From Haliotis rufescens (taxonomy: Eukaryota), in assembly GCF_023055435.1 (NCBI RefSeq), contig NW_025964372.1, forward strand, positions 38,626,001 through 38,690,000: DNA of 64,000 nucleotides, in the 5' to 3' direction. The notes beneath the pieces are model-generated. The model saw nothing but the letters and a program-made list of their open reading frames with translations, was not told where the DNA came from and made no database searches. The translations under genes and the position numbers were made by a program. Shown here piece by piece: positions 28,132 to 63,723 of this stretch. Numbering within the stretch: the stretch's first letter is position 1; every line of letters begins with the position of its first letter.

Positions 28132-28450
28132 GACCGCCTCCGTGGTCTAGTGGTAGAGCGTCCGCCCGGAGAGCGGAAGGTCCGGGGTTTGATCCCCGGC
28201 CGCGTCATACCAAAAGACGTTAAAATATGGAACTTGTTGTTACCATGTCTGGCGCTCGGCATTAAGAGGCTAAAACAAGGACTGGTCGCCTCGGAGTCAG
28301 TATACTGTGTCTGAGTGGGATATCCATGTGAAATTGCGGCATGGTATCTCAGTGGGCTAGCACTAGAAAATCAGCATCAGTCAAGACAAGTTCAAGCAGC
28401 CGCACAAACGCGCACGTGCAGTATTCTGAAAGGAGATTGAGACCCATTTC
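28132..28450 (+). mobile_element. tRNA-derived SINE family D
   Basis: Head GGTCTAGTGGTAGAGCG...GGTTTGATCCCC then GTCATACCAAAAGAC; inverted copy at 31810-32043; decayed copies near 46465, 51950, 54060 and 59985. Confidence 0.8.
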
Positions 28451-31809: not shown

Positions 31810-32043
31810 AATTGCTAGCCCACTGAGATACCATTCCGCAGTTTAACAAGAATACCCCACTCAGACACAGTATGTGACTCCGAGCCGACCACTTTTTTTA
31901 TTTTATCCCCTCAATGTCTCGCGCTAGGCAGGGTAACAACAAGTAACATCTTTTAACGTCTTTTGGTATGACGCGGCCGGTGATCGAACTGCCGACATTC
32001 CGCTCTCCGGGCAGACGCTCTATCACTAGACCACGGAGCGGTC
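31810..32043 (-). mobile_element. SINE family D
   Basis: Reverse complement of 28132-28370. Confidence 0.8.
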
Positions 32044-33942: not shown

Positions 33943-33982
33943 ATGATAGTGTTGGTGTTGTTCAGCTTAGGACTTTCAACAG
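33943..33982 (+). CDS. Signal-peptide exon (MIVLVLFSLGLST+g)
   Basis: Hydrophobic N-terminus; donor CAG|GTACGT in phase 1 fits exon 35335; Inr-like TCAGTT at 33921. Confidence 0.75.
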
Positions 33983-36900
33983 GTACGTGTTTCCAAAACT
34001 GTATCTGAACATTTCCTTATTCCTTGAATTGAGGAAGAATATTTTTGTCTGTTTATTGCTTAATAATAGTAATATTATTGTACATACATGTAAGTTTTGT
34101 TGTTTAACGCCGCCCTCAGCAATATTCCCGCTATATGACGGCGGTCTGTGAATAATCGAGTCTGGACCAGACAATCCAGTGATTGACATCATAAGCATCC
34201 CTCTGCGCAATTGGTTGGTTGGCTGGTTGGTTCGTTGGTTAACGCCGCACTCAGCAATATTCCAGCTATATGACGGCGGTCTGTAAATATATCGAGTCTG
34301 GACCAGACAATCCAGTGATTAATACCATGAGCATCGATCCACGCAATATGGGATCGATTACATGCATCAACCAAGTCAGCAAGCCTTTTACGACAATCTT
34401 AGTCGCCTATTCATGCTAGTTTGGGTTGCTGAAGACCTATTATACCACGGATCTTGACGGGTCCCATATATGTAAGTAATCGAGTCTGGCTTCATCAACC
34501 AGTGATTGATATTATGGGTACGGCCACGCCTTAAGGGTTCGAACTCGCCATCCGTTTAGTCCTTCTTACCACAAGCTTTGTAAATACCCGGAATAACTCG
34601 GAATCACAACGGATGTGGCCGAGTTATACTAATACGTCACCATTATCTGACGCGTACTCTAAATTTTCCCCGAGATTCTCTAGATACAGGAGGCATCAAA
34701 GAGTGACCGAAGGTGGAGTTACCATCACATTTAAATCCGATTGTATCCGATTTGTAGCTCGCCGCAATCAATAGGAAGTTGATGTGACTGATCTAGCGGG
34801 GATACAGCTGTCTTGATAGCATGCTCGATTGTACCTTAAACCTTTTGAAATGTAGACACAAAAGGCTGGAGTATATTGCTCGACATAAAGGGAAAGTTGA
34901 AGTCATCCTGTCATGCAGTCTTGTGGGAATACATTTGTGACTCTGAATTTCTATGCATCGATCTAAATATGAAACAGATGAGGCGGGCTCTTTTTTTTCT
35001 CGTTCAGGTGGGTAAATCAGTGGAAGGAAATTAGTTTTTTGACCATTAATGAACGATATTAGATGACCGATACACATGAAGCTTAAGTGATGACTTTTGC
35101 CAATCCGAGCAGAAATTAATAATTTTTATGCATAAAGAAACATATCTCCAAGATGGGGAGCCCCATTGGTTCCCATGGGGATGCCTTAGTTAAACTTCTC
35201 TTGGCCATTTCCCGTGATTTTTGTTTTTTTTCAAATCCAAGCAGACATTAGGTCCTCAAAGAAACAGATCATCAGGAAGCACAATATCTTCGGGAAAAAT
35301 TCAGTAACATGCTGTTTTTCCCCTTCTTTTTCAGCGGCCTCCCTGGACTGCTACAATTGTAATCATTATGATGTTAACAACGTTCAGCATTCTTGTCAGG
35401 TTTTGAAATGTAACAAAGGAGAGGTCAGTTTTTCTCTTTTATAACCCATAGCTTTAGTATTAACCAAGTTCATATAAAAACGTATGCGCACTAGTGCATT
35501 TATCACTTCACGTGCACTAGTGTATCGTTTACGTCATCCGGATGGACCCGTGAAGATCCGGGGTAGAATAGGTCTTCAGCAACCCATGCTTGCTGTGAAA
35601 GGCGACTTTGCTTGTCGTAAAAGGCGACTAACGGGATCGGGTGGTCAGGCTCGCTGATTTGGTTGATGCATGTCATCGATCCCAATTGCGTGGATCGATG
35701 TTCACGATGCCAATCACTGGATTGCTGGTCCAGACTTGATTATGTACAGACCGCCGTCATATAGCTTGGATATTGCTGAGTGCGGCGTTAAACAACAAAC
35801 AAACGTCATCCGGATGGTATTTTGGACGTCATTCGAATCTTATTATGACGTAAGGTCGAAATGACATCTCATTAGAACCGACGTCATGGCTGAAGATTGT
35901 TGACGTCATTCAACAATTGTAGTTCTTAAAGACGGCGGTGGTTATCAGTGCTTTTTTTTAAGTGGAGCTCAAAGGGATTACGAAGGAATGGCTAATAAAT
36001 AAATTATCACACTCGCATGTGAGGGATGCTTCGTTCACGTTACAAAATATCCATAGAAACATGGAGGTCACGAATCGGTACATTTGTAACTCCTAGAGGA
36101 CAACGACAAGTAGAGACAGTTCTCTCCTGCACCTCGACGGCGGAGTGGACAACAGGAACCTACATGTCCTACGGTCTGATGTTGTGTACAACACTACTTC
36201 TCACGAGCTAGTATTTGGGATCTACTACAGCATCGGCGATGCAATCGGCATTACCTACCCTCATACCATCATCATCGTTGTTCTCAGAAGGTGAGATTTG
36301 TGAACATGTCTACAAACAATCGACATTGTTTACATACCGAAATCTGAACAATACCTTGGAATTTAGGCGACAGCCATTTGTGACACTTATCTATCTCTCC
36401 GGAGATATTGAACTTAATCCTGGACTTAAAGGAGATAACTTTGATGAGCTAAAGTGTGCAATAATTGAACAGATAAAGGAATCGGAAGCTAGATTAACTC
36501 AAAATATTGAATCTGTTAAAGCTGAAATCCAGACAATCAAGAACGATGTTCGTGAACTTCGAGACGAGGTGAACAGCAACAAAGAAGAACAGGCAATCTA
36601 AAGGCTTGATATTGATGCTGTTTCCGATAGAATAGATGCTATTGATGGTTATGGCGATGGTGTTAACAGTTTGGAGGAAAGAGTTGAAAGTCAAGAACGA
36701 CATAGTAGAAGAAACAATTTAATTCTTTATGATGTTCCTGAAGGAGATAGTGAGTCCTATGATGCATGCAGGGGATATTATTAACAGAGATAGAAAAATA
36801 AAGAAAACAAACTTCCCCAGCTAGTGTCAAGAGATGTTGAACGTGCACATAGACTATCTATAAGGGAAGATAACCAACCACGCCCACTCATAGTGAAAAT

Positions 36901-39900
36901 GACTCATTGGATGGGCATGATGCAAGGGGTGAGCATGAGAGGTACTAGTATACTGAGAGAGATGGGATTCGGGGTTGCTAGTGACCTAACGTACGAGGGG
37001 CGTTCAATAAGTTTTGCAACTTTAATATAAGACCAAGTCGCAGAATATCTTTTGCACTTTTACTTTTCAATATTATCCCCATTTACCTCAATACACTTAT
37101 TCCATTTGTCCTTCAAGCTTTTAATACCACTTTTATTGAAATCCGGGGGCTAAGTCACGGGGGGCTAAGTCTGGGCTGTACAGTTAAATCACCCACCCTA
37201 CAGCCCAGACTTAGCCCCCAGTGACTATTTCCTGTTCCGGCAAATGAAATCTGCCCTAGGATGACGAGGACCTAGAGGCTGCCACAGAGGCGTTGTTAGA
37301 GGGCCAATCTACGGATTTCTATAAAAGTGGTATTAAAAGGCTGAAGGACAAATGGAATAAGTGTATTGAGGTAAATGGGGATAATATTGAAAAGTAAAAG
37401 TGCAAAAGATATTCTGCGACTTGGTTTTATATTGATGTTGCAAGACTTATTGAACTCCCCTAGTATAACCAACGACGTGAACGTAACAGATTACGCGCTG
37501 AAAATCCTAATAAAAGGTTTTTCTTCAAAGGAGGAAAAATTGCCCAGGACATAAAACGTGACGCAGAGAGAAGAAATGGTCCTGCACAGACTCAGGATAG
37601 TGATGTTAGACCAAAATATGGTGGAACCAGGAACAACGGTAATCGGAGGCAGGGTGAAGAAAACAGAATTGACTTTCGGCCTCGATCACTCCGCCCCAGC
37701 ACGAGAAAGAAGACAAACAATAGAAAGGGGGTGGCCCGGGCCAAAATGATTGGAGGCTGTGTCAAACAGGTTCACCTACAATTCCCCCTTTGTTGATTGG
37801 GTCCATAAAATTTAATTTCTGGAACGTGTCTGGACTAAAATCCAAAGTAGACGATTGTGAATATATTACCTTTGTTAACTTATTCGATATTATCGGGCTA
37901 ACTGAAACATGGTTGAAGGAGACAGATTTGGGTGGTTTATTCAGTGGTTTTACTATACACACAAAGGTTGGTGAGCGGATATCTACCCGGGGACGACACT
38001 CAGGTGGTTCAGTAACAGTATTAATCAGAAACAGTTTAGCACTTGTGAAGCGGACCAAAGTGTGTGGGAGTGGTATACTTATTTTACTAGATAAAGAAAT
38101 ATGTGGTCTAAAGAAAGACGTATTATATGCATGTGTATATATTCACCAATAACCTGTTACGTCAATGCAAAAAAGGCATCTCATTATTACAAGACGATCT
38201 GTTGCATATGCTTTCTAATTGTGACAATGTGTATGTTATCATCGGAGGTGATTTCAACTCTAGGACTGGCACACTACCTGATTTTGTTGAACACGATATT
38301 CTTGAATACATGGAGGGTAATGATTTATAACGGGTTGGAGTTTCTGTTGGATAGTTTTAACATGAAACGATTTTCGGTAGATTCAACTATAAACAGGTTT
38401 GGTAAATGCTTGTTAGATATGTGCAGTATTCTAAACATCCATATTATGAATGGAAGATGTGGATCAGACGCGGGTGTAGGGGATTTCACTTTTATAGGAA
38501 ATCAAGGTGCGAGCGTGGTTGATTAAATAATATGTTCATCTGAGTTGTTTAATATATGCAGTAGATTTGACATACGCTCACGTCCTGAGTCATCACATCT
38601 TCCACTCACAATGGATTTACGTACGTTTCATAAAAACTGAACAGATTAAAAGTGATCAAATTATTAATGAATCTTTCAGATTTACATGGGTCCACGATAG
38701 AGCTGAGAACTTTAGATATAATTTGACATCAGATGAAGTATCTTATTTACTTGAAAGGGCAGTAAATACAGCATTCGTTAGCATCGATGCTAGTGTAAAA
38801 TATATCACTGAAGCCTTATAAATGGCTGCATCAGATATGAAGAGAAAAGTTTGCATTAAGAAACCGCATCGTCAGTGGTATGAAAGTTGTTGTGAGTTAT
38901 TTAAAAAAGAAAGATGTAGATGTTGAAATATATTTCGAAGGAAAAAAGATTTGGTTTCATTGGACAATTACCAACGCATCCGGAATCAGTATAACGAAAG
39001 ATGTAGAAAAAAGAAAGCTGAATATTATGAAATGAAACAGGAACTTCTTGAGAAAAAACATTCATAATTTTAAAAAAGTATTTTGGTCAACTCTTAAAAA
39101 GCTAGGGACAACTCCACACAGTCATAATAATATTAGTATCGAAAATTGGTATGATCACTTTAAAAAAGTACTCACGAGACTCCGATGACGAGTGATGAAA
39201 TAAGAGAAAACATTTCTCATCTTAAAAATGGTAAATCAGCTGGATATGACAAACTTATATCAGAGTTTTTTAAACATTCTATAGATATCCTTGTACCATA
39301 TCTAGAGTTGATTTTTAATATTATGCTGGAAACATCATATTTTCCTGAAGACTGGGCACTTGATATAATCGTCCCTCTCCATAAACAGGGTTCAGTGAAT
39401 GATACAAATAACTATCGAGGCATTGTGTTATCCAGCATTTTTAGCAAAGTGTTCATATATATTCTAGGGCTGATACTTACGAAAAGATTAGTGAGTCTCA
39501 GTCTGGTTTCAGGCAAGGATACTCGACAAATGATAATATATTTAGGTTGCAAACAACAATACAGAAGTACCAGTAGATTTCTCTAAAGTTTTTTATTCTG
39601 TTAGCAGAAATAAATTATGGTCACTTTTCAAAGCACATGGTCTCAGCATTAGAATTGGAAAGTTAATGTGCTGCATGTATCCAAATGTGAAGGTTTGTGT
39701 GCGAAATAACGGTACTGTGTCTTACACATTTGAAAACAAAATTGGCGTTAAGCAAGGGTGCATTTTACGTCCGTTTTTGTTCTCTTTCTTTTTCAATGAA
39801 TTAGCTCAACAAATTCAGCAGAACTGTTCTGATGACATCCTACTTCACCCGGAAACTATTATTAGTTATTTTTTTCTTTTGTTTGCCGATGATATAGTAA

Positions 39901-42900
39901 TGTTTCCAAGCACAGTACCTGGACTACAAAAGCAAATTAATCAGCTGGAATGTTATTGCAAAGCAAAGAATGGAATTTATCTGTCAACAAGAATAAAACA
40001 AAAGTTATTGTTTTTAAAAATGGTGGTACACTAGCCAGAAGGGAGAAATAGTTTTATCAAGGACATTCATTAGATGTTGTATCGTCCTATAAGTTCTTAG
40101 GTGTATATTTTACAAATAGATTGTCATGGAAGATGCATGCTAACCAGGCTGCTGTACAAGCTAAGAAGATCCTAATTGGAATTCTTCAACATATGAAAGT
40201 TCTTGGAAATATAACCTATAATACATTCTTTAAGATTTTCGATACAAAAATAAGCCCAATTTTGTTATATGGAGCAGAAGTTTGGGGATTAGAAATGATT
40301 GATGTTATAGAAAAAGTACATTTATATGCATGCAAAAGAGTCCTTGAAGTGAAACCTAGTACGTCTGATCTAATGGTCTATGGAGAATGTGGAAGATACC
40401 CATTAACTATGTTTGCAAAGTTAAAGAAGATAAAATACTTGATTAAATTAGTTAAAATGCCTGCAAAAAGATATCTAAAGAATTGTTATAACGTGTTATT
40501 ACTCTATGATCAACAAGGACAGGCTAACTGGGCATCTTCTGTTAAGCATCAACTTTATTCATATGGTTACGGTAATATATGGACAGAACAGGATACGTAT
40601 ATACCAAATCATTTCAAAGATGCTTTCACTCAGACACTGAAAGATATGTACATTCAAAATTGGCATTTTTCCTGATCAGTATCAAAGAAACTATCAAGTT
40701 ATTCCCTCTTTAAAAACAGCTTCCGTGGAGAGCAACAATACGTATTAGATTAAAAACATTTCGAATTGCACTTGCAAGATTCAGATGCGGTTCACACGAA
40801 CTCTTTATAGAGACGGAAAGATATATGGGGATCGTGAGAGAACACAGAATTTGTCAGTTTTGTGATTTAAACACTAGAAAATGAATACCATTTCTTACTT
40901 CTTTGTCCCTTGTATGCTGAACTCAGAAAACAGTTTATTGATAAATATTATATCCGTTATCCAAGTCTACAGAAATGTGTTACATTAATGTCAAGTAAGA
41001 ATTTAGCAATAACGAAAAAGCTGTCAATGTACATATTGCATGCTATGAAGCTAAGAAGTTCCAAATGTGTTACCTTTTAAATGTATATGCACCCATTACT
41101 ATGTAACATGTACTATAGGCCTGTGGTCTCTCAGTATCATGAATAAACACATATACGTGAGGGATGCTGTTTTTACGAAACTGGTGATAATAATTCGTGT
41201 ATTTCCCTCGTTCTCGCTCGGGAAATACAATATTGTTTCTTTGTTTGTTGTTTAACGACACACAATATTCTAGCCAAATGACAAGAATTCTGACAGTCAT
41301 AACGTTTAATCTGTATGACACACATGCTCGTGTAATTATATATATTGTTAATGAGCGAGGTGATTAAAAATATGTGTATAATAATAGTTTCACCTGCTTC
41401 TCATCATTTTTGACATTATCCAAATACCATCGTGACGTGATTTATGACCACAATAGTAATGACGTCATAGCAAATAATTTTTGACGTCATATTGACTCTG
41501 TTAGCACTGCAAGACGTTTTCAGTATAGAAAACTATCCATGTGCTACATCTGATTGATAAAGTGTGGATAATAACAGGGAGTATTATATATATGTGTGTT
41601 TCTACTGATTTAGAAAACAGGCGATGCTCAGGAAATAGAACTGCAGATACTCGTTTTGTGAAAATGGTTCCACTCATATACCATTCTGTTTCGACTTGTT
41701 ATTCTCTGGTTTTGACCTTTTATACATGACACCTTTTCATAGCCGATTAAACAAAACACATTGATATCTCATTGACCTGGAGGATTTTTAATCTTTCCGT
41801 TTTACATGTTTCTGTACAAACGAGTATAAAGTATTTCAAATCATTTGCAATATGTTTTTGTTATTTGTTAATAGTTGCGATATTAGAGTATTTTGGTTTG
41901 ATTGATTTATTGACTTCCGGATTTCTGTATTAGGTTGGATTTTGTTTCCCTAAAATTCTGAGGAATAAGTACAAGTACTTTTTGAGCCAAATTGAACTTG
42001 AATATATTATTCGGTTGGTCAGACTTGTTGACTGTGTTGATAACATGTCATCGTATCCCGATTTCGTGGATCGATATTTATGATTTTAATCACTGGATTG
42101 TCTGGCCCGGGATCATGTAGCTGGAATATTGCTGAGTGCGGCCTTAAACAAAATAATCCTGAATTAATTGAATTAATGAATTAAGGATTATCAATCATCG
42201 GAATTAACATGGGATTATTTATCGTATCGCTGGAAATGCGTTGTCGTTGAAGTTGTAAGCAGTAGTGTATTTGTCAATGAAATTCATCTATTTCAGTTTT
42301 GCAAAATGGAAACAGATCACAGCACCAAAGTACATGGACATTGTGAAGATATTCATCAACTGGCAGTGAGTTCACAATGACATACGGAGCTTCTCTTTCC
42401 GACGTTAGGCGATGCTACTTTGCAATGCATAATTCCAACTTCTTCATTCACAGAAAATAAGTAAAACAATAAAATCATTAAGATGTTATTATAAAACTTA
42501 CTAATGTTGTTTTCCATGGCCAATAGCGGAATATGAAATACCTGAAGAAATGTCTGTAGCATGTCATGTGCCTCTTCCATTCCGTACCATGTCATGTCAC
42601 GACTTTATCATGTTATGTTCTCTTCTCCTCCATTCGTACCCTCTCCTCTGTACCACCTCATGTCCTCTTCTCCTTCGTTATGTATATTGTCATGACTGTA
42701 CGCCATTCCGTGACATGTCTTGTCATCTTCGCCGCCTCTGTGTACCATGTCCTCTCTCACGTCATGTCCTCTTCCATTCTCTACCATGTCATGACTTCTC
42801 ATCTATTGTTTACAACTTCAAGACCTCTTCTCCATTGTATAAAATGTCATGTCCCCTCCTCGTCTCCTCCAGTCTCTATGACGTAATATCCGCGTCTCCT

Positions 42901-45900
42901 CAAGTCTCTACCATGTCATATCCTCGTCTCCTCAAGACTCTATCACGTAATTTCCTCGTCTCCTCCAGTCTCTATCACGTAATATCCGCGTCTCCTCAAG
43001 TCTCTACCATGTCATATCCTCGTCTCCTCCAGTCTCTATCACGTCATATCCTCGTCACCTCCAGTCTCTATCGCGTCATATCCTAGTCTCCTCCAGTCTC
43101 TTCCATGTCATGTCTTCGTTTCCTCCAGTCTCTATCACGTCATATCCCCGTCTCCTCCAGTCTCTATCACGTCATATCCTCGTCTCCTCCAGTCGCTACC
43201 ACGTCATTCCTCTTTTCCTCCAGTCTCTACCACGTCATATACCCGTCTCCTCCAGTCTCTATCACGTCATATCCTCGTCTCCTCCAGTCTTCACCACGTC
43301 ATATCCTCGTCTCCTCAAGACTCTACCACGTCATATCCTCGTCTCCTCCAGTCTTTACCACGTCATATCCTCGTCTCCATCCAGTCTTTACCACGTCATA
43401 TCCTCGTCTCATCCAGTCTCTACCACGTCATATCCTCGTCTTCTCGAGTCTCTACCACGTCATATCCTCGTCTCCTCCAGTCTCTACCACGTCATATCCT
43501 CGTCTCCTCCAGTCTCTACCACGTCATGTCCTCGTCTCCTCCAGTCGCTACCACGTCATAACCTCGTCTCCTCCAGTCGCTACCACGTCCTTCCTCTTCT
43601 TCTCCAGTCTCTACCACGTCATATCCTCGTCTCCTCCAGTTTCTAACACGTCACACCATGGTTAATTACATTAACATTGCAGCACTGCCATGCGACACCT
43701 TCGTGTATTCCGTTTCATGAGAACAAGTGCACTTTCTGCTGTGATACAGATGAAGAGGTGCACAAGACACTCCAGCAACCAAGTTAGTGCTTGGCATCAT
43801 AATTAGACGTTAAAACTAACGTTTATCTCTGGAATTGTGTGTTCCAGCTTTGACATTCGACACATACAGAATCCTTCACACATGGACTTTCTTTGGTATC
43901 TGACATAACGACAATGACTGTGGTAGTTTATTTATTACCGACGTTAAATTTACATTTAAGTGTAAAGCAACAATAACTGTCGTTCGTTACAGACCCCTGA
44001 CCGAAAAGGGCATGTATATTGATATATGCCCAAATATAGGCAATGATCCTGCTATTATGTGGGTAAACATGACAGCAGCAACGCTCAAGATCTTTATTTA
44101 AGTATTTTTGTCAACTGATAGTAGTTCAGTTCAGGCGCATAGCTAATACGCAGAACAACTGTAAAACATAAAAATAAGTGAAACAGTGCCTCATTCGGAC
44201 CTACCGTGTGTCACTCGCACCGCCGGTGTAATCAACATAGCTCCCTTTACCGTTGTCAAGCAAGATGAGGATAAGGATAACTATGGAAACGTCGCTATTG
44301 CGGGATAATAAAGAAGTTGTTATCCATAAACCTTTCACAACTTTGTCATCCGTTAAGTTCTAAGAAACGCCTATCAACCAAGACGTTTACGCCCATTGTA
44401 TATGTGTGGAATGACACGAAACGCAAAAACTCCCAAACCAGCCGTTTACGTTTGAGGTTACACACAACCAAATGTTTTTCCATAGACTTCTATAGTAACG
44501 TTATATTTTTTTTTAAATAACTAAGCATTCAACAGCTATTACCTGTACGTGTGTGCATAGTTTGGCCTTAAAGCAGCAATAAAAACAAAAAAATGACTAG
44601 CTTAGCCAGCTCCTTTTCCGAGTACAGGAAGCTAAACACACCACCCCCAGTTTCGCACCAAATGTCACCTACATGAAAATAGCTGTGGTAACATTCAGCA
44701 TAAGTCATCATGTTGAAAAAGACAGTACTAAATAAAGAAAAACATGATCAGTTTTAATAACTGGATGGATGTACATTTAAAAGACATAACAATCTTACAC
44801 AATATCCACCAATCACAGCCTGCAGATATCTCTCGATCTGCACTGAAGACTCCCTACGAAAACCGCACTGACCCAACTGGTTCTGATTTGGTGTAGTAGA
44901 ACCTTGACCGACAGCAGGCCTTCCTCAACCATCTTGTGTTATCCACGAGGCGCAGTTGTTAAGCTTGTGTCGCTGCTAATGGTGGTCATACCTGGTGCTG
45001 ACTTGTGAACTGACCATTGACCCCGCCCCACTTCAAGCCTGAGGTGACGTTGACTTTAACAAAGGACAGGTGTTGACACTCGTAATGACACCAGTTATTG
45101 TTCTCTTGCAAAATGGTAATTTGTTTACGTTTAGTTATTATTTCCCATGACAGTCGGTGATGCACAGAAACTTTTTTCCCGCTTGTATAGATGTCAAAGT
45201 GGTATTAAACATTTTTCTTTTCATTTCAGCGGAATCTCTGGCGTGTTACAATTGCCACCATTATGATGTTAACAGCATTGGCCATTCTTGTGAAGTTTTG
45301 CACTGTGGTGTTGGAGAAGTATGATATATCGATTCCTTTAGTTGTATTGCTAATGATTGTGAGTGTGGTTTTACGCCGCATTTACTGATATTCAAGAAAT
45401 ATCACGATGGAAAGCTCCAGAGAGAAGCTTCACAAATTGTACATATGTGGGCAATCGAACCCGGTCCTTCGGCGTGACGAGCGAAATGTTAAAGCATTTG
45501 GCCTCCTCACAATCCACATGGCCATTGGGGGACGGAAGTAATAGGACTCCAGTGGTATCTTCATAATTTACGATTTCGAATAAAACGAATAAAACCTATG
45601 AATGATGAAATCTCACTGCGAATCCCTCAAGCATCATGGGAAAAAACGATAAATTATCGAATGACCTGCCTGAAAACAGCCAAACATGAACTGGCAACAT
45701 CCGAGCTTGTACACATCTTCAGTTAGACTGGCAACATCTGTATCATGATATAATCAATTGGCTAATTCACCCTGTTCTGTAAATATAATTACTTCTAGTT
45801 TTGCAAGATGGAAACAGACCACAACAGCAAAGTGACAGGAACGTGTGCAAAGATCAATGAAATGAGTGTGAGTATAAGAATTTAATTTACTCTTCTAGGC

Positions 45901-51900: not shown

Positions 51901-54900
51901 CCACCGATACTATCGAGTTGTTGCTTGTACCAATCCCATGTCGCATTTTCACATTGAGAACCAACTCAGACACAGTATACTGACTCTGAGTTATCCAATA
52001 TTTGTTTAAGGCCCGTAATTCCAAACCTGCAGAGGAACAGCAAGTACCATCTTTTAAAGTAGTGTAGTATGACTCAACCAGGAAATCGAACTTACCTGGA
52101 AGAGTGTTTGTACCATGTCAAGTTCATTTGTATTCACTGGCTTCAATAGAATGCATTACCATTGCAGCACAGGCCATAATAGCATTTACATTGCAGCACT
52201 GTCAAGAACACGTGACCTCTTCATGTATTCCGTTTGTCCATGACAAATGTACATTCTGTTGTGCGACTGGAGAATGTGTAAGCCAGTCTCTCCAGCTGCC
52301 AGGTAAGATCTTAACATAATTAACTTTACATCCTTTGGAAACAAATGAGCGTTAGTAATGAATACAGGTGAAGTCCAGATAATGTAAACCAAACTTTCAT
52401 ACAAATATTGTTCGAGCTGGATCCAGATATTTATTTGACATAATATCAGTAATGTACTGTCAGTTTCAAAACATGTTGCATTCCTCTACTGTAGCCACCC
52501 ATCACGCTATACCTACACCACCAACAACAACATCTACCACAACGTTGCCTACGGTGGTCCAAGCAGCTTCGAAGACCACTGTTCGGCCATGTAAGCTTCA
52601 CCAGTACTACTTGAGGAACAACTTCTTCAATCACTGTCCTCTTAAATAATGTCTACCATGAACGTGACAGTACGCTGGATTATTGAATTATGAATTTTTA
52701 TATTGCAATAGTAATACTCTACTGGCTCGAAGTCTTGTTTATCTACATCAAAGGTCAATGAGTAGGGGCTGTATATTAAACCAACACTATTATACAGGTT
52801 CGATGTCTTGCTGATCTAAATTGTCTTTGCCTTGTCCTACTATCACTTTGGACCAACAAACTTCGATTTCGATTAAAGTCCACAGTTTATTTTTTCACTA
52901 TAATGCGAGTTGAATGAATTTGCTTATCTGTTTATTTTGAGATTGAGATATTATGATGGGATCTGAAAAGAAATAGATGATATTATTCACAGATGTCAAA
53001 ATGTTTCTCAATACATGTTTCTTTTCATTTCAGTGGAATATTTGAACTGTTACAATTGCCACCACTTTGACGTCAACAACATTTACTATTCTTGTGAAAT
53101 TTTGCACTGTGGTTTTGGAGAGGTATGATTTATAGCTGATATAAGTATATTGCAAATGGTCGAATTTAGCTCTATTTCTGTAATGTCACGGCAGGGAATA
53201 CAAGAAGTAGGCTTCACAAATTGTACACATGTGGGAAATCGAAACCGGACGTGACGAGCGAAAGGTTAAAGCAATAGGCTACCCCATCGTCCACATGACC
53301 AACGAGAGAAGGAAGTAATAGGACTCCAGTGGTTTTTTTTGATAATTTCATGATTTCGAAATGTGAACAAAACCCGTTAATGATGTACTCTCACTGCGAA
53401 TCTCTCAAGCATCATGGGAAAAAAGATATATCATATCGAATGACCTGCCTAAAAAGCCAAACTTGTATCACCTACCGTTCAATTATTGAGTCATTACGAG
53501 GTCACATGAGGGTCTGCTGTTGAAAATGGATCGTTTAACGAGATACAGGGAAAAGACATAATTGAGGTTGTAGCATTGCTACTCGCAAACGTTGTGAGCA
53601 TATTTTCTGAAACATTAAGCAAACCTTTGTACCTCGTTGCGAACAGATCTCTAATTACACTGACAACATCTGAGCTTGTACATATATCATCAGTTACACT
53701 AGTTACACCTCTATCATGATATAATCATTCGGCTAATTCACCCTGTTCTGAAATGTCTGTAAATATAATTCCTTCTAGTTTTGCAAGATGGAAACAGACC
53801 ACAACAACAAAGTGACAGGAACGTGTGCAAAGGTCAATGAAATGAGAGTGAGTATAATATTTTAAGTTACTCTTCTAGGCGTAAGTTAACTTTGTTTGTG
53901 TAACACAATATATTATGCTTGTTACAGGCTCGTGTTTGGGAATATAGTAACTTAAAACTCGAAGTGAGGTTACAGAGCTGCTGATATAACAACGTATAAC
54001 GGATCTCATTTTGATATGTGTCTATTTCGAGTTTTTGCTTGTACCAATCCCATGTGGCATTTTCACATTGAGAACCAACTCAGACACAGTATACGTACTC
54101 TGAGTTGTTCAGTATTTGTTTTAGCCCCGTAATTCCAAACCTGCAGAGGTACAACAAGTACCATCTTTTAAAGTAGTGTAGTATGACTCAACCAGGAAAT
54201 CGAACTTACCTAAAAGAGTGTCTGTACCATGTCAAGTTCATTTGTAGTCATTCGCTTCAATAGCATGCTCTTACATTGCAGCACTGTCAGGAACACGTGA
54301 CCTCTTCATGTATTCCGTTTGTCCATGACAAATGTACATTCTGTTGTGCGACTGGAGAATGTGTAAGCCAGTCTCTCCAGCTGCCAGGTAAGATCTTAAC
54401 ATAATTAACTTTACATCCTTTGGAAACAAATGAGCGTTAGTAATGAATACAGGTGAAGTCCAGATAATTTAAACCAAATTTTCATACAAATGCTGTTCGA
54501 GCTGGATCCAGATATTTTTGACATGGTCACATTCAAGAAATACAATTGATACATGCATTATGTATACATGCAGACATTTCTTATGAATATGGAAAGGATT
54601 TTGTGTTAAATTAAATTCTAATTCCTTAATATCTTTTTCAAACAATTCCTCCTTAGTAAAAGGGATGTCTGGAAATACGTTTTGCTCGGAGGTCATTAGT
54701 TACCATCAATTATCATGGTTATATGACCAAGACCTATTAGAGGACTTATTATGTTGAAAACATTATTGTTTATTCCTGTGTCATAAATATTTATGCTAAA
54801 TGTTTTATTTATCAGTTGCCACCATAGATGTGGTATATTATACATTTTGTTGCAATCGAAGACGATGCCTTTATGATTAAAGATTTTCTTTAAATCCTCG

Positions 54901-57900
54901 AAAGGAGTGAATCAAGTTGAACAACAAATATATTGTTCCATGTGTATGCCTTTGTCATACCCATTCTCTATAAACAGATCAACCCCGCGAAATTAAGGAT
55001 GTCATAAAGGTTCAAACAAAAAACAAAATCTTTTATACAGGATGTTTGGGTTTTTAAAGATTTGGTTTAAATGAACGCGTCTCATATTTGATAGTTTCGA
55101 GGATTCAATAAATGTTTCCACATCTACCATTCTAAGGCCATCATCTTCTCATGACTTTATCAAGTCAGATCTTTTTATTTGGTCTGTTTTGCCATTTCCT
55201 ATAAATTTAATGAAAGTTCTACTAATGAAGTTTACTGGAGCAGATAATGACAGGGTTTATATAAGTGTAATTATACCTATTAAAGTTAACCTTCCTACTT
55301 CAGCTTGCAAATAGTATACTAATATGTTTTCCTGGTATTTATTACCCAAAGGTCTTCCAGACGTTTGTTAAGTTTGATTCGTAATACTTCCAACTCTTCT
55401 GAATGCCAGTCAAAGTGGAAATCCTGACACAGTGTCCTAATACTTCCTGACATGAAACCAATTGAAATATCTTTGGTTTTATCTTTTGTCCTGATAATTG
55501 AGAGAAAGAAGCTGAAGTGGTAATAGAGGCTCAAATAATTTCTTCTCTACGACTTGTCCTAATTTATATTGTTCATTTGTTTTGTTTTATCCCTTTAATG
55601 TCTGTGGTGCATGTTATCGTAATCCCAAATATTTAAGCCACAAGGATGAAAATATAGGGCGATATTGGACCACCTTGTCTTAAGACACTTTCGTTATAAA
55701 AGAAGATGACGATGACCATTTTGTATTACACAGGACGTGTCATTATTAGTGAATATATGAATTAATGTGATCATATGAGGACCAGCACCACATGCAATGT
55801 TTAGACACTACATCAAACCTTTTTTCAGTAAATCGATAAGCAATAAAAATAGTTGGTTTCTGGTATTTCTTTTCTTAAAACATGATATCGTACAGACGTC
55901 TTATGTTATCACCGATACATCTACCCTGAATGTAGCCTGTCTGGCTTCATGAATTATGGTATTTAGAGTTGGTTATACAGGTACTCAGTATATTATTAAG
56001 TGAGTTGGGTAAAGATGTTGGCCGCAAATTCTTCAATGTGTGTTTGTCCATGTTTGGTTAAGGTAAACTTGTGATAACTACTCATTGTTGTGGTTAATGT
56101 ACTGTTAGTAACAGCTTCTGTGATAAATCTGCAGGCCCAACTTTCGAAATCTTTCCAAAAGAATTTAAAGAACTCAATATGTAAGGATCAACACCCGGGC
56201 ATTTATTATTTTCCTTGGTTTTGCTGCTTTTTGTATTTCTTCAAATTCCATTAAGTTTTGGTGTTTGTATAAACTTTATGTATTAATCGTTTACGTGGTC
56301 TCCATTGTCCATAAGGGTGTAAAGAGTAAGAACTTACTGATATTGGCAAATGTGCATGTCAGCAATTCCCTAGGCTGATTTGCCATTTGAAGCGATATGA
56401 CGTCACAGTGCTTTGAGAAAAGCAAGATATGACGTCATTCATTGTTTATTTACGTCACATACGGATAATATTACGTCAACTGAAAAGTAGACTAACTTCG
56501 GTGAAGTGTCCCTGTGGGTTGACATTTCATCCCTTTTTCTTCATTTTTGTCTTGAAACTCAGAATGTGAATGAAAGCTATAGTCCCTAGCTAAATGATTG
56601 GGGTTTACACCATCCAGACAGACGAAACCTAATTACTATGTTTTTACATAGATGTTTCTCTAAAATGGCATGGTTAAAACAGTTCTTGCTTCAAACTGTT
56701 AACATGCATTTTCATATGATTGCCAATGAGAGTGAGCTATAAAGTCACCTAAGTAGTATTTCATCCACATTGTGACCTTATATTGATAATGAGGTATGCA
56801 CACTCCCACTGAGAATAACGTTTTTCATTATTTTGACAACTATAGTTTACCAGAATTATAACATGATGTCAGTAATTGACTGTCAGTTTCTAAACACGCT
56901 GCATTCCTTTCCTGTAGCCATCCATCACCCTAAACCAACATCTACCATAACGTTGCCTACAGTGGTCCAAGCAACTTCGAAAATCACTGTTCGGCCATGT
57001 AAGTTTCACCACTACTACTTGAGGAACAACTTCTTCAATCTCTGTATGTTTAAATAATGTCTACCGTGAACAGTACGATTATTGAATTATGAATTTGTAT
57101 TATGAAATAATTATACTCTACTGGCTCAAATCTTGATAATCTACATCCAAGCTCCATGACTGGTAATACTATACATATTCTTGCTCATCTAAATTGTGTT
57201 TGCCTTGTGCTTATATCACTTTGGACCAACAAACATTAGGAATTTCGATTAAAATAAAGTCCCACACTTTGTATTTGCAGCATAATGAGAGTTGATTGAA
57301 TTTGCGTATCTATGTATTTTGAGATTGAAATATTATCAAGGGATTTGAAAGGAAATAGATGTCAATTAATGAGGTGATATTATACAAAGATGTCGAAATG
57401 TTACTCTTTTCATGTTTTTTTTTATTTCAGCGGAATATTTGAAGTGTTACAATTGCCACAACATATACTATTCTTGTGAAATTTTGCACTGTGGTTTTGG
57501 AGAGGTATGATTTATAGACTCCTATAGCTGATATAAGTATATTGCAAATGAGTGAGTAGGTGTGGCATTTAGCACTATTTCGGAAATGTCACGGCGGGGA
57601 ATACAATAAATAGGCTTCACAAATTGTACAAATCGAACCAGGACGAGCGAATGGATAAAGCATCAGGCTACCCCACCGTCCACATAGCACTTTTATTTTT
57701 AAACGATTATTGGCTATTTTCTGAAGCTTTAAGTGAACATATTTATCTCGTTGCAACATATCTGTAGTTACAATGGCTACATCGGTGCTTGCACACACAT
57801 CAGTTACACTGGCTACACCAGAACTTGCACACAGATCTCCCGGTACACGGGCTAAATCTGAGCGGACACACATCACAGTTACACTGGCTACAAAAGTACT

Positions 57901-60900
57901 TGCACACAGATCTCCCGGTACACAGGCTAAATCTGAGCTGACACACGCATTCAGTTACACCGGTTTCATCTTAACCTGCGGACAGATCTTCAGTTACACC
58001 AGCTACATCGGTCCTTGTACACACATCAGTTACACTGGTTACATCTGAGCTGTCACACACATCTCCAGACACACTGGCAACATGTCAGCTTACACACATA
58101 TTTCCAGTTACAGTGGCTTCATCTGAGCTTACACACACATCTCCAGGCACACTGGCAACATGTCAGCTTACACACATATTGCCAGTTACAGTGGCTTCAT
58201 CTGAGCTTACACACACACATCTCCAGGCACACTGGCAACATGTCAGCTTACACACATATTTCCAGTTACAGTGGCTTCATCTGAGCTTACACACACATCT
58301 CCAGGCACACTGGCAACATGTCAGCTTACACACATATTTCCAGTTACAGTGGCTTCATCTGAGCTTACACACACATCTCCAGGCACACTGGCAACATGTC
58401 AGCTTACACACATATTGCTAGTTACAGTTGCTACATCTGAGCTTACACACACACATCTCCAGGCATACTGGTAACACGTCAGCTTACACACATATTTCCA
58501 GTTACAGTGGCTTCATCTGAGCTTACACACACATCTCCAGGCACACTGGCAACATGTCAGCTTACACACATATTGCCAGTTACAGTGGTTTCATCTGAGC
58601 TTACACACACACATCTCCAGGCACACTGGCAGCATGTCAGCTCACACACATATTTCCAGTTACAGTGGCTTCATCTGCGCTTACACACACATCTCCAGGC
58701 ACACTGGCAACATGTCAGCTTACACACATATTTCCAGTTACAGTGGCTTCATCTGAGCTTACACACACACATCTCCAGGCACACTGGCAACATGTCAGCT
58801 CACACACATATTTCCAGTTACAGTGGCTTCATCTGAGCTTACACACACACATCTCCAGGCACACTGGTAACATGTCAGCTACACACATATTGCTAGTTAC
58901 AGTGGCTTCATCACACACACATCTCCAGGCACACTGGCAACATGTCAGCTCACACACATATTTCCAGTTACAGTGGCTTCATCTGAGCTTACACACACAC
59001 ATCTCCAGGCACCCTGGCAACATGTCAGCTTACACACATATTTCCAGTTACAGTGGCTTCATCTGAGCTTACACACACATCTCCAGGCACACTGGCAACA
59101 TGTCAGCTTACACACATATTGCTAGTTACAGTTGCTACATCTGAGCTTACACACACACATCTCCAGGCACACTGGTAACACGTCAGCTTACACACATATT
59201 TCCAGTTACAGTGGCTTCATCTGTGCTTACACACGCATCTTCTGTTACTCTGGCTTCATATGAACATGGACACACATCTTCAGTACACTAGATGGATACA
59301 TGATATAAGCAAATGTCTAATTCCCCTTGTTCTGAAATGTCTGTGAACATAGGGTATAATTTCTTCTAGTTTTGCATGATGGAAACAGATCATGACGCCA
59401 AAGTGACTGGAAAGTGTTCCAGCGTCAATGAAATGAACGTGAGTATAAGATTTCAAACCGCATTACTCCTCTTGCCGTTAGTTGACTTGTAAAGCATGTC
59501 CCATTCGCTGTCTGGGCTGCGTGTAGAGGGGGCAAGGGCCCTGAGCTGATGATGAGCCTTACAAGCCTGACTGTGCCAGGATCACCCAAACCCTCTTTGC
59601 TGCATTTTTTATTTTAATCTGTTAATAATATAAGCAGCAGCAGCATCATCATCATAATAATAGTGCCACTTATATAGCTCCACATTGAGAGCATTGTGTG
59701 TTACTCTAGTCAAACATGAAGCAGGAGAGCAGAGGAAGAAATTGGCAATGGCAGTAACTATTGCCCTGGAATAATTTCAACATGAGTAAGTCAAAAGTAA
59801 ATGCATTTCTTCCGAAAATCATTACAGGATACGATTTGTAAAAGAATTTATATGGAATATAACGTAAGCTGGGCTTAAGGATATACGTTAATGTGAAATG
59901 GGTTAACGTCGCGTTCAAGATTATTTCTCTGCGACGTGCATTCATGTTGGTTTATGTGACCTCTTGTACTAGCACGGCTTTACAGTGCTAGCCCACTAAG
60001 ATACCATGTCGCAATGTAATATGGATGCCCCACTCAGATAAAATGACCCTAAGACAGCCAGTCTATCTATCCCCTTAATGCAGAGCACCAGACAGGGTAA
60101 GAGCAAGTACTATCTTTCAACTTATTTTGGTTTGACTTTGACAAAGGATATCGAACATGTCCACACTAAGTCAGTAAATAAAAGCGACAAAACCCTTTCC
60201 ATGTTCATAAGTTATGTCGGCTCAGAGTCGATTGTACGTTTTCGACTATATCATGAGCATGTGTTTATGAATCACTATGAAATAGTGATGTTACCAGATG
60301 TATCCTTCCCCAACGGTGACACCCGTCACAAACACCCGACAATGCAATTGTACACCTGAAAAAATCACGGGAACAAATACGGCTTATACAGTAATAATGT
60401 AGGTCACCAGAGGTCAAAAGGTCACGAAATTTGACCCCTGCTTAAAATATTACCGACTGTCAGAAAATACACTGCAGATACCACACCTATGGGACTTTCT
60501 TAACCCAAATGCGCTATGATTGAAGCCAAGAAGTACTCAATTCTGTTAAAAGTCTGAAAAAATGAAATTTATTGTTTTTTGTGGTGTGGTACAGAACGGT
60601 TTTTGATACATTTTAAGACAAATGTTGTTTTGCGCTAAAAGCAAACAAGATTTGAATGAAGTTGGACTTCTTGAAATGTGTCATTATGTTTTGATCCAAA
60701 ACTACACCTATTGCTAATAGTGAGTGAGTTAGTATGGTTTTACGCCGCTTTTAGCAATATTCCAGCAATATCACGGCGGGGGACACCAGAAATGGGCTTC
60801 ACACATTGTACCCATGTCGGGAATCGAACCCGGGTCTTCGGCGTGACGAGCTAACGCTTTAACCACTAGGCTACCCGACCGCCTCGGCTAATAGTCATGT

Positions 60901-63723
60901 CCTATATGTATTCAGATGTTGATTAGTTACATTTTGATGTAATTTGGTTACCACTCATCCAAGATGAACGCCATCTAGTACCATATATGAACATGGTTTT
61001 AACCAGAATATATTACAAAATATAACTCTTTCACAAATATGTTGAGTTAGAATAAAAAGAGAAGCATCTGGACCTTTATTCTGAAAAAGAAAAGACAACT
61101 TAATGTTTTGTACTAAAGTTGGATTTTGAGACAATAGCTCCTCCTAATGAGAACAAGAACAGGGATGTGAGTATAGAAAAAAAATTATGAAGGGAAACAA
61201 TTGCTAATATTTAACACTTCTTAATATGTACATACCACACCAATGGGACTTTCCTGACCCAAATGGGCTATGATCGAGGTACCTAAGTTTATTAAAATTC
61301 TAAACAAGTGAAATTTATTGTCTTTTGTGGTGTGGTACAGAACGGTTATTGATGCATTTTAAAACAAATGTCATCATGCGCTAAAAACATGTAAAATTGT
61401 ATGTGGACTGCTTGAAATATGTTTGCATTAATTTATAACTCTTAACTCCAAATTATAACAGCCATGTGCTAGATGTAGTCAGAAGTTGTTTTGATGCGAC
61501 GTTGTTCTGTTTTTCCGGCTCACACGATTAAACTGAAGGTCAAATTGGGGTCAAATGGGATATGCGAACCGCAATAACTTAAAATGCAGTTATCTGTAAT
61601 GTAATATTTCATAAGATCACACAATAAGACTATTTTTATCACATTAGTGTTAGAAACTTAAGTCTTGACATTGTAGACCTAAACAATGGTGGTCACATAT
61701 GAGTCTGCTACTATAGAGTACACCGTTGATTACTCATCATCTGGACCATCATCAACATCACTCGCTTCAAATTAAACCTCGTCCTTAACTTCCTGATTGC
61801 TACATGTCTGTGATTTGCAATGGTATGCACATTTCATGTTATTCTGTAGGCAGGTACATCTGCAGCTACAACTCTCCTCTAAGCACTTCTTTAAACAGTT
61901 ACAGTCCCCTTGTCAATAACCAAGGCCCCATCCTCCTCCTTCCAACCATTACCAACAGGAAAAGCCATCATTCTCCTTTTCCATACTGGATAATTGTCCC
62001 AGTTGCAATGGTTCTGCAGTGAAGAGGTGCAAGGAGGAAGCTGCTAAGATTCAGCTTCGCAAAACAGGTTGAACCGCAATTCACGAATTCTCAATGAGTG
62101 TCCTTGTGCTGTATAGACAGCACATTTGTGACTCTAGTGCCTTGAACAGCTGTGGTGAAACGTTCCAGCTTGTGCCTTAGAAAGTCAATGTGTTGCTGTG
62201 TATGTCGCTGGTGAGTAGCCTGAGGGCTGAAACCTTTCCTCTTCAAGTGAAGCAGCTAATAGTGGTGTACAAAGTTGAAACATCGAGTTCTTTTGTATTT
62301 TAATATTTTTTAACATTGCAGCACTGTCAGGAACACGTGACCTCTTCATGTATTCCGTTTTACCATCATAAATGCACATTCTGCTGTTCAACTGGAAATT
62401 GTGTAAGCCAGGCTCTGCAGCTGCTAGGTAAGATCTTAACATAGTTAAGGTATATAAAGGTAAAAAAAAGATAAGTTACATCCTTCAGTTACACTGTAGT
62501 AGATCCCGTTGCTGTTGGATAGACGTCGGATGGAAAAACAGTACGTTTATAACGAGATCAACTACTAATTTAATTCGTTATAACCGTAGTTCGTTATATG
62601 CATATATACAGCACATAAACAGCAAATCGACGGGACCCCAAAACAGGTATGTCATATCCATCATATCCATTATATGCGTGTTCGTTATAAACGTAGTTTA
62701 CTGTAATGACTGAATGGCATAGTGGCATTATCTATAAGTTTGTTTAATGCCGCACTCAACAATAGTCTGGACCAGAAAATGATGGATCAACCAAAATCCC
62801 TACCCTGACTTCTCGATCCATAAGTCGCATCTTACGCCAAGCATAGGTTGTTGTGGACCAATAACCTCGAATCACTAAGTGGTCATGTTACTCATAACGG
62901 TGTAAAGAGTGAAAACGATATTGACACATGTGCCTTTCAGCAATTCGAAATTCTGATTTGTCACAGTGCTTCATGAAAAGTAGGCTGATTTCATTCTCGT
63001 TAGATCCGGTTTAGAATAGGTCTTCAGCAACCATACTTGCCGTAACAGGCGACTATGCTTGTCGCAAGAGGCGACTAACGGAATCGGGTGGTCAGGCTCG
63101 CTGACTTGGTTGATGCATGTCATCGTATCCCAATTGCGTGGATCGATGCTCATGATGTCAAACGCTTGATTGTCTGGTTCAGACTCGATTATTTACAGAC
63201 CGCCGTCATATAGCTGGAATATTGCTGAGTGCGGCGTTAAACAACAAACAAACAAAAAATGTAATGGGATGAGTCATATATCGTCGCATGTTGTTTTGAT
63301 GGAGTGTACCTAATATGATGACAAATGCAGCAGTCATCACCCCAGGAAGAAAAGTAGTGATTTCACTTCATCTGTATGTTTTTGTATACTGTACATTGCA
63401 ATACGAGTGCGGCGTTAAACAACAAACAAACACACACTCGTCGAAGGGGTGACAGTGCGCCCGGGCAGACAATCCCCTACACCCAAGAGTGGTTACAGTG
63501 TATCCGCCCACTCAATCCCTCACCCTCTTAATGCCATCGGTGCAGTTGGTTTTCTTTTGATGGGTGATTTATTTTGATAGTTTTCTAATTCTTTATTACA
63601 TTCTTATGTTTCTGTTAGACACGTCTCATAATCCCACACCAACCGCATATCACCAATCTACTACATCTACGCCAGCAACAACGTCGACAGGTGGAATGAT
63701 ATCACGGTCGACTCATCTACCAG
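33943..63723 (+). CDS. Secreted multi-repeat Cys/His-rich protein: five Ly6/uPAR-like modules plus Thr/Pro-rich linkers; 20 exons, 570 codons seen, 3' end beyond the window
   Basis: Exons: 33943-33982; 35335-35423, 42297-42365, 43683-43782; 45230-45318, 45799-45867, 46706-46811, 50351-50440; 50883-50971, 51650-51718, 52197-52302, 52495-52590; 53034-53122, 53779-53847, 54282-54387, 56918-56998; 57431-57504, 59370-59438, 62322-62427, 63619-63723. All are GT-AG with compatible phases and no stop in 1711 nt. Confidence 0.85.
34097..34463 (-). mobile_element. Two adjacent SINE family B copies
   Basis: Two tails (near 34100 and 34235) with the shared body. Confidence 0.75.
34690..35290 (-). mobile_element. 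Penelope-like reverse transcriptase remnant
   Basis: Minus strand reads GIPMGTNGAPHLGDMFLYA ... ASSVSYLD ... TRLHD, matching the Penelope RT pattern GIPMGTNCAP/SYLDL. Confidence 0.7.
35335..43782 (+). CDS. Module 1 (exons A1, B1, C1)
   Basis: ASLDCYNCNHYDVNNVQHSCQVLKCNKGE/FCKMETDHSTKVHGHCEDIHQLA/HCHATPSCIPFHENKCTFCCDTDEEVHKTLQQP. Confidence 0.85.
35546..35802 (+). mobile_element. SINE family B with 15-bp TSD
   Basis: TSD ACGTCATCCGGATGG (35531-35545, 35803-35817). Confidence 0.9.
36031..41156 (+). mobile_element. Full-length decayed APE-type LINE (ORF1 + ORF2) in intron 2 of the multi-repeat gene
   Basis: 12-bp TSD GTGAGGGATGCT (36019-36030, 41157-41168). ORF1 is coiled-coil with RRNNLI and VERAHRL motifs. 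ORF2 has APE (WNVSGL, GLTETW, GGDFNSRTG), RT (NYRGI, KQGCIL, LFADD) and a C-terminal CxxC..EYHFLLLC. AATAAA near the 3' end. Clade not determined. Confidence 0.92.
36994..37463. mobile_element. Mariner-derived fold-back MITE nested in LINE ORF1
   Basis: TA TSD; terminus CGAGGGGCGTTCAATAAG; ~150-bp inverted arms; HPPYSPDLAPSDYFLF motif inside. Confidence 0.92.
42560..43655. repeat. 32-bp minisatellite, degenerate at its 5' end
   Basis: Unit CACGTCATATCCTCGTCTCCTCCAGTCTCTAC. Confidence 0.92.
45230..50440 (+). CDS. Module 2 plus linker exon
   Basis: ESLACYNCHHYDVNSIGHSCEVLHCGVGE/FCKMETDHNSKVTGTCAKINEMS/HCQEHVTSSCIPFYHDKCTFCCSTGECISNSLQVP/AIHHAKPTPLTSTTTLPTVIKATSVTNVRP. Confidence 0.85.
46019..46254. 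repeat. (CTGGG)n/(TTGGA)n microsatellite spanning an N-gap
   Basis: Seen directly; absent from the paralogous introns of modules 3 and 4. Confidence 0.85.
47140..47397 (-). mobile_element. SINE family B
   Basis: Reverse complement of the 35546 copy. Confidence 0.85.
47600..49680 (-). mobile_element. Old L1/Tx1-like RT remnant, duplicated at ~54680-56250
   Basis: Minus strand reads MEDNESPGVD and IQGGPISP*LFILVAEILG. Confidence 0.6.
48130..48510 (+). mobile_element. tRNA-like repeat family E
   Basis: TGGCTGAGCGGGTTAG...GGGTTCGAATCCC; homolog at 16405-16705; absent from the duplicated intron copy. Confidence 0.65.
50883..52590 (+). CDS. Module 3 plus linker exon
   Basis: EYLECYNCHYFDVNNIYHSCEILHCGFGE/FCKMETDHNNKVTGTCSKVNEMR/HCQEHVTSSCIPFVHDKCTFCCATGECVSQSLQLP/ATHHAIPTPPTTTSTTTLPTVVQAASKTTVRP. 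Confidence 0.85.
53034..56998 (+). CDS. Module 4 plus linker exon
   Basis: EYLNCYNCHHFDVNNIYYSCEILHCGFGE/FCKMETDHNNKVTGTCAKVNEMR/C exon same protein as module 3/AIHHPKPTSTITLPTVVQATSKITVRP. Confidence 0.85.
54680..56250 (-). mobile_element. Duplicate L1/Tx1-like remnant
   Basis: Collinear with 47600-49680. Confidence 0.6.
57431..63723 (+). CDS. Module 5 plus divergent Thr/Ser-rich exon
   Basis: EYLKCYNCHNIYYSCEILHCGFGE/FCMMETDHDAKVTGKCSSVNEMN/HCQEHVTSSCIPFYHHKCTFCCSTGNCVSQALQLL/DTSHNPTPTAYHQSTTSTPATTSTGGMISRSTHLP. Confidence 0.82.
57745..59290. repeat. 78-80-bp dimeric (2 x ~39 bp) minisatellite in the module 5 A-B intron
   Basis: CATCTGAGCTTACACACACATCTCCAGGCACACTGGCAA+CATGTCAGCTTACACACATATTTCCAGTTACAGTGGCTT. 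Confidence 0.93.
60722..60887 (-). mobile_element. SINE family A
   Basis: Near-identical to the 9804 copy; TSD GCTAATAGT. Confidence 0.9.
63001..63257 (+). mobile_element. SINE family B
   Basis: Homology to the 35546 copy. Confidence 0.85.

Follow-up and report, generated by a model that had tools for sequence, protein, structure and literature searches.

Three-finger domains of the Ly6/uPAR (LU) type occur singly as modulators of receptors, as toxins and as ectodomains of receptors. Several of them share one chain in the vertebrate proteins uPAR (three domains), C4.4A (two), TEX101 (two) and CD177 (four), which are compact, anchored by glycosylphosphatidylinositol (GPI) and not known to have mucin linkers. 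Lustrin A of abalone nacre is likewise modular: it is secreted, its Cys-rich domains recur with Pro-rich linkers between them, and part of the chain is rich in Ser. In the nematode Toxocara canis, Tc-MUC-1 to 4 are secreted mucins with ShKT (SXC) domains (as cited in PMC7333891), and the pedal mucus of limpets has proteins with ShKT domains (PMC7333891). Several non-standard mollusc architectures are listed in a 2026 survey of LU proteins from invertebrates (PMC13719153), and a combination of LU domains, mucin linkers and ShKT domains is not among them. The analyses presented here concern a 64,000-nucleotide (nt) stretch of the Haliotis rufescens genome (assembly GCF_023055435.1, contig NW_025964372.1, positions 38,626,001 to 38,690,000; 'the window', whose coordinates are used throughout), in which positions 33943-63723 of the plus strand correspond, on the predicted gene structure, to the 5' two-thirds of LOC124138448, a gene that spans ~50 kb and has 26 coding exons; the window contains 20 of these. 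We suggest that LOC124138448 probably encodes a secreted mucin-like protein in which five His-rich, 12-Cys modules, likely three-finger domains, would form a multivalent extracellular chain.

The window is eukaryotic DNA with a G+C content of ~34-50%, dispersed repeats and gaps of N. Three-frame translation of the plus strand revealed five recurrences of short Cys-rich open pieces between 35.3 and 62.4 kb, and exon borders were set by aligning the five copies. The resulting chain of 20 exons has GT-AG borders and compatible phases throughout, and joins to 1711 nt or 570 codons without a stop, which bears out the exons proposed in an initial annotation made from the sequence alone. The exons, together with one assembly gap, are as follows.

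33943-33982, plus strand: exon 1, start codon and signal peptide (MIVLVLFSLGLST...), phase 1 out; matches the XP_048245368.1 N-terminus exactly
35335-35423, plus strand: module 1 exon A (C1-C4), phase 1 in, phase 0 out
42297-42365, plus strand: module 1 exon B (F-C5-x13-C6), 69 nt, phase 0-0; 89% identity to module 3 exon B
43683-43782, plus strand: module 1 exon C (C7-C11; 12th Cys replaced, 6-nt deletion), phase 1 out
45230-45318, plus strand: module 2 exon A
45799-45867, plus strand: module 2 exon B
46058-46218, no strand: assembly gap (N), intronic, between module 2 exons B and C; GGATT/CTGGG microsatellite
46706-46811, plus strand: module 2 exon C (C7-C12)
50351-50440, plus strand: linker exon after module 2, Thr/Pro-rich, phase 1-1
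50883-50971, plus strand: module 3 exon A
51650-51718, plus strand: module 3 exon B
52197-52302, plus strand: module 3 exon C
52495-52590, plus strand: linker exon after module 3
53034-53122, plus strand: module 4 exon A
53779-53847, plus strand: module 4 exon B
54282-54387, plus strand: module 4 exon C
56918-56998, plus strand: linker exon after module 4
57431-57504, plus strand: module 5 exon A, with a 15-nt deletion in finger 1 specific to H. rufescens
59370-59438, plus strand: module 5 exon B
62322-62427, plus strand: module 5 exon C
63619-63723, plus strand: linker exon after module 5, donor CCAG/GTATGG in phase 1; the gene runs on past the window

The translation of this independently built model is identical to residues 1-570 of XP_048245368.1, a Haliotis rufescens protein of 908 amino acids (aa) entered as 'uncharacterized protein LOC124138448 isoform X2', whose protein cluster comprises isoforms X1-X5 and the H. 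cracherodii ortholog XP_071096126.1. The gene model is thus not new, since RefSeq already predicts exactly this exon chain, and the description of the gene as 'hidden' has to be given up: it is hidden only from a bacterial-style open reading frame track. Among 1.84 billion representative proteins, the only strong match to a profile built from the exon C peptides of all five modules was the LOC124138448 protein itself (E 6e-107, six stretches); four weak matches to sushi-like repeat proteins were taken as chance Cys-rich similarity. Literature searches, by accession and on ShKT-containing or His-rich mucins of abalone, returned no paper on LOC124138448.

Each module of ~87 aa is built from three exons. 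Exon A begins after TCAG and ends GGAGA(A/G)/GT, exon B runs for 69 nt from ttctag/TTTTGC to a /GTGAGT donor, and exon C begins after ATTGCAG/CACTG and ends CCAG/GTAAGA. A start codon and signal peptide occur in exon 1 only; none of the modules contains a start, and the phase-1 domain borders noted initially are seen at both ends of all of them. The true exon B was recovered from each of the five modules; in module 1, nothing else in the 6.9-kb intron region can still be aligned with module 3, to which exon B is 89% identical. A C-x13-C look-alike beside exon C (52063 and 54177) was considered as exon B and rejected as a repeat-derived piece, because it overlaps a dispersed repeat also found at 28204-28347 and 31828-31990, does not occur in modules 1 and 5 and, in module 2, has no acceptor that could be used.

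The Cys pattern of the modules is C-x2-C-x11-C-x4-C-x5-C-x13-C-x8-C-x7-C-x7-C-x2-CC-x4-C. The five-copy, 12-Cys pattern of the initial annotation therefore holds in outline, but the third spacing is x11 and not x10, and the pattern is exact in modules 2-4 only. All 12 Cys columns are conserved among the modules; module 1 is missing the 12th Cys (CCDTDEE) and, through its 6-nt deletion, has x5 between C7 and C8, and module 5 has x6 between C2 and C3 owing to its 15-nt deletion, which is not found in the H. cracherodii ortholog. The same Cys skeleton is common to 16 modules from four Haliotis species. The modules are rich in His as supposed: His makes up 8.6% of the region they cover, and at six columns it is kept in at least 8 of 10 modules. 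The four Thr/Pro-rich linker exons lie after modules 2-5, where spacers had been placed. Exon lengths (89/74 nt for A, 69 for B, 106/100 for C and 90/96/81/105 for the linkers) differ by multiples of 3 only, and the paralogous introns between module exons vary from 432 to 6873 nt, in agreement with the proposed contrast between in-frame exon indels and indel-rich introns.

The gene does not end at 63723. In 39 kb fetched downstream, six more coding exons were mapped 7.7-20 kb past the window, beginning with a sixth linker. Three six-Cys domains of one exon each come next, then a Ser/Thr-rich exon that continues into the first half of a C-terminal Cys-rich domain, and last an exon ending in TGA at ~83.68 kb (extended window coordinates); a search of these 39 kb found no further modules. 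The three six-Cys exons (73096-80228, extended window), with the spacing C-x6-C-x6-C-x8-C-x3-C-x2-C, are ShKT-like: scanned as separate pieces, as were all downstream parts compared with Pfam, they align with PF01549 (ShK) over profile positions 1-37 of 37, with E 0.01-0.07 and 14-17 bits, below the 20.9 cut-off. The C-terminal domain has 12 Cys and a C-x2-CC-x4-C ending followed by Asn (CCTTDDCN), and its N-terminal half matches PF00021 (UPAR_LY6) with E 0.0043 and 17.9 bits, under the 24.8 cut-off. Residues 726-794 are 58% Ser, Thr and Pro. The hydrophobicity profile of the full 908-aa protein contains no transmembrane segment or GPI tail; since its sole hydrophobic segment is N-terminal (KD19 1.88 at residue 1) and the C-terminus is hydrophilic, the product is predicted to be secreted without a membrane anchor. 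A signal peptide, Ser/Thr/Pro-rich stretches and the lack of an anchor together fit a secreted mucin-like protein with putative O-glycosylation, and the analysis supports the initial view of a single gene of many exons whose secreted product is a string of beads joined by mucin-like linkers.

Elsewhere in the H. rufescens genome, exon A and exon C types are confined to this gene, bar one diverged match 11.6 Mb away; a further weak match (C301:605477) has no CC motif and was discarded. The diverged match marks a paralog on the same chromosome (contig positions 26993700-27015800, minus strand) with the same exon A/B/C split, whose 525-aa product (P0013), annotated 'integumentary mucin C.1-like', carries one 12-Cys module with a very His/Asp-rich finger 1 (HKYDHHHHDDR), followed by four ShKT-like exons, mucin stretches and a C-terminal LU-like domain. 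The two proteins are collinear (E 2e-45), and the paralog module aligns with a LOC124138448 module at E 8e-14 and 33% identity with every Cys aligned. Relatives with two modules (H. asinina, P0011) and three modules (H. rubra, 'mucin-2-like', P0012) were also found. These Haliotis relatives share with LOC124138448 the 12-Cys skeleton and the order modules, ShKT domains, mucin, LU, and differ from it in having one to three modules rather than five and a longer finger 3 (x10-11). A more distant relative is a sea-slug ShKT-mucin protein of Elysia crispata (P0015) with three His-rich modules and ShKT-mucin repeats; its modules have 10 Cys, the C2-C3 pair being missing, and share the C-x2-CC-x4-C-V/A-L ending, and no C-terminal LU domain is present in the record. 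Because the Elysia protein carries such modules, the module family appears to predate Haliotis, and the label 'lineage-specific' needs softening: the family extends over four Haliotis species, a second gene in this genome and, distantly, Elysia crispata.

The modules evolve under purifying selection, as had been proposed from the indel pattern: dN/dS (non-synonymous over synonymous divergence, Nei-Gojobori) between modules is 0.17-0.49, with dS reaching 1.2-1.8 in comparisons with module 1. The H. cracherodii ortholog (94% identity) keeps all five modules in frame, the missing Cys of module 1 included. Considering that modules 3 and 4 are more alike within species (95% in H. rufescens, 94% in H. 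cracherodii) than each is to its ortholog (91% and 87%), and that paired substitutions occur at equivalent positions of the two (e.g. residues 257/377, 262/382, 269/389 and 293/413), the sequences indicate concerted evolution of this pair (50883-54387), presumably by gene conversion.

These data bear on whether the product is a structural component of mucus or matrix at all, since a real gene of this kind might instead encode a fast-evolving reproductive or immune recognition protein, of an egg or sperm coat or for pathogen binding. Of the 908 residues, 57 are substituted between two closely related California abalones, with another 12 positions gapped; modules 3 and 4 show concerted evolution, and species and paralogs have different numbers of modules (1, 2, 3, 5). 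All of this would suit such a protein; however, dN/dS between modules stays below 1, and the joint mucin and ShKT architecture resembles that of secreted surface or mucus mucins such as Tc-MUC, as far as these are described in PMC7333891. We give a recognition role a minor, though real, share of the probability.

The fold of the modules is the second point on which readings may diverge. The LxCYxC start (L-x-C-Y-N-C), the CC-x4-C end, the length (~80-90 aa in the LU family) and the phase-1 borders all resemble Ly6/uPAR proteins such as CD59, Lynx1/2, PSCA and Prod1; the 12 Cys, which include an additional pair in finger 3, the 8-9% His, the lack of a terminal Asn and the three exons per domain do not. 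In CD59, the position equivalent to C2-C3 is an optional finger-1 disulfide, and we take the Cys skeleton of the modules to fit the 10-Cys LU frame on the CD59 spacing. An AlphaFold2 model was built for the paralog on a six-row family alignment (block-mean pLDDT, the predicted local distance difference test score, of 47-83 across the module, with the rest of the protein unreliable). When its module was used in a VIA-align search, ranks 1-31 of 48,161 chains were three-finger proteins, with near-whole targets covered, and CD177, TEX101, C4.4A and uPAR are among the structural matches; Foldseek with the same model gave no significant match, its weak matches being mostly LU proteins and three-finger toxins. 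Additionally, hhalign aligned a profile of the 16 modules collinearly with the four C-terminal domains along the Cys skeleton (P 8.5e-4). Considering the VIA-align ranks together with the LxCYxC start and the CC-x4-C end, we argue that the modules most likely adopt a three-finger (Ly6/uPAR, CD59-like) fold, a reading that the model of the paralog module suggests; an LU-like fold as first proposed is thereby the best-supported one.

Several results weigh against that fold. AlphaFold on the LOC124138448 protein itself (also from a six-row alignment) gave a pLDDT of 26 and is unusable. Pfam returned nothing for the modules, exon by exon at E <=10 or as whole proteins at E <=1, and accordingly no LU-clan (CL0117) model detects them at or above its cut-off. 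Searches of PDB sequences with the protein and with the exon C profile found no match, and a plain hidden Markov model of the module compared with the C-terminal LU domain scored no higher than shuffled controls. The modules also lack, as the initial annotation had remarked, the terminal Asn of the LU motif (CCxxxxCN): CC-x4-C is followed by V or I. An ESM Atlas search with one module yielded scores <0.8 and no lead, and PF00021 run over the whole genome in six frames gave five weak matches, none in LOC124138448.

Alternatively, the modules could be a new disulfide-rich fold, or belong to another Cys-rich family that mimics the ends of LU domains, the three-finger model being then AlphaFold's default to a familiar Cys pattern. 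We consider this rather improbable: 31 consecutive top matches among 48,161 chains, covering near-whole targets, are three-finger proteins; the Elysia modules miss just C2 and C3, the pair that corresponds to the optional finger-1 disulfide of CD59; and the same proteins end in a CC-x4-CN domain with a sub-threshold match to PF00021.

Very unlikely, finally, is an over-joined chain, in which several genes or a decaying tandem duplication with pseudo-exons had been merged and a five-module protein was not made as such: the chain is known here from genome sequence and RefSeq prediction, module 1 has no 12th Cys, module 5 carries its 15-nt deletion, and RefSeq isoforms X4 and X5 each lack precisely one unit the size of a module (X3 lacks one ShKT unit), a skipping that could reflect ambiguous read mapping between near-identical exons; but only exon 1 supplies a start codon and signal peptide, the modules are in phase 1 at both ends, 1711 nt run without stops or frameshifts despite reverse transcriptase sequence and two satellite arrays in the introns and a DDE transposase remnant upstream, dN/dS is <0.5 for all module pairs, and H. 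cracherodii keeps five in-frame modules down to the odd Cys count of module 1.

Returning to the secreted chain of likely three-finger modules, we suggest that the product would run, in order, from a cleavable signal peptide through five tandem modules with Thr/Pro linkers and three ShKT-like domains to a Ser/Thr mucin stretch and a C-terminal LU-like domain. Within the modules, the predicted disulfides are the five of LU domains (C1-C5, C2-C3, C4-C6, C7-C10 and C11-C12) plus an extra C8-C9 in finger 3. The linkers are presumably O-glycosylated, and the chain would be extended, multivalent and extracellular, in mucus or another secreted matrix. The three-finger and ShKT domains and the terminal LU-like domain may act as protein- or ligand-binding beads along it. 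Since His makes up 8.6% of the module region and the paralogs contain His/Asp runs in finger 1, such as HHHHDD, it is a reasonable idea that binding or cross-linking through the conserved fingers, rich in His and Asp, could depend on metal or pH. A bolder proposal, by analogy with His-metal bonding in mussel byssus, is that the modules are a gastropod-specific, metal- or pH-switchable cross-linking unit carried on mucin linkers and used for reversible gelling or sticking of mucus, adhesive or shell matrix; we regard it as doubtful, and if true it would be a new job for the three-finger fold.

Compared with the described systems, the abalone protein shares with the vertebrate multi-LU proteins the tandem arrangement of LU-type domains in one extracellular protein, and differs in being apparently secreted, in its Thr/Pro linkers and in the combination with ShKT-like domains. 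Its likeness to the Tc-MUC proteins lies in the C-terminal half, where Ser/Thr-rich mucin stretches alternate with six-Cys ShKT-like domains, whereas the nematode mucins have no three-finger modules and the abalone ShKT matches lie below the Pfam cut-off. The likeness to Lustrin A is in the modular plan, its Cys-rich domains being of another type. The family would add a divergent 12-Cys, His-rich LU subtype that is missed by standard profiles, and a new architecture of LU arrays with mucin linkers and ShKT domains; it may also serve as a case of exon-shuffled, phase-1 module expansion (1, 2, 3 and 5 copies) with concerted evolution. Invertebrate three-finger surveys that rely on Pfam thresholds may consequently undercount such families. 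For abalone biology, the protein is a candidate component of mucus, adhesion or matrix.

The introns and flanks of the gene merit some further description. The assembly gap at 46058-46218 is flanked by (CTGGG)n and (GATTG)n runs and sits within a 372-nt insertion relative to the collinear intron of module 3; both flanking exons are in phase 0 and no residues are added at their junction in the H. cracherodii protein, so the gap belongs to the intron and touches no coding sequence. Upstream, a remnant of a Tc1/mariner-type DDE transposase (33046-33640, plus strand; PF13358, E 7.5e-8) lies ~300 nt before the start codon. In module 1, the 6.9-kb intron that separates exon A from exon B holds a gene-sense fragment of a retrotransposon without long terminal repeats (non-LTR), with a reverse transcriptase domain (36215-40675, plus strand; PF00078, E 2.5e-8). 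At 42857-43653, a 32-bp pyrimidine-rich satellite of 25 copies (87% matches), each unit of which contains CCAG, ends 30 nt before the exon C acceptor of the same module. A nested 39/79/158-bp satellite of ~1.5 kb (57766-59289) occupies part of the module 5 intron that lies between exon A and exon B, and a short stretch homologous to it is found in a module 3 intron (51472-51587). Finally, a ~260-bp dispersed element at 63003-63260, present in at least 40 copies at 92-95% identity on many contigs, looks like a young repeat resembling short interspersed nuclear elements, and pieces related to it encode an 'ECGVKQQTN' frame that recurs throughout the window.

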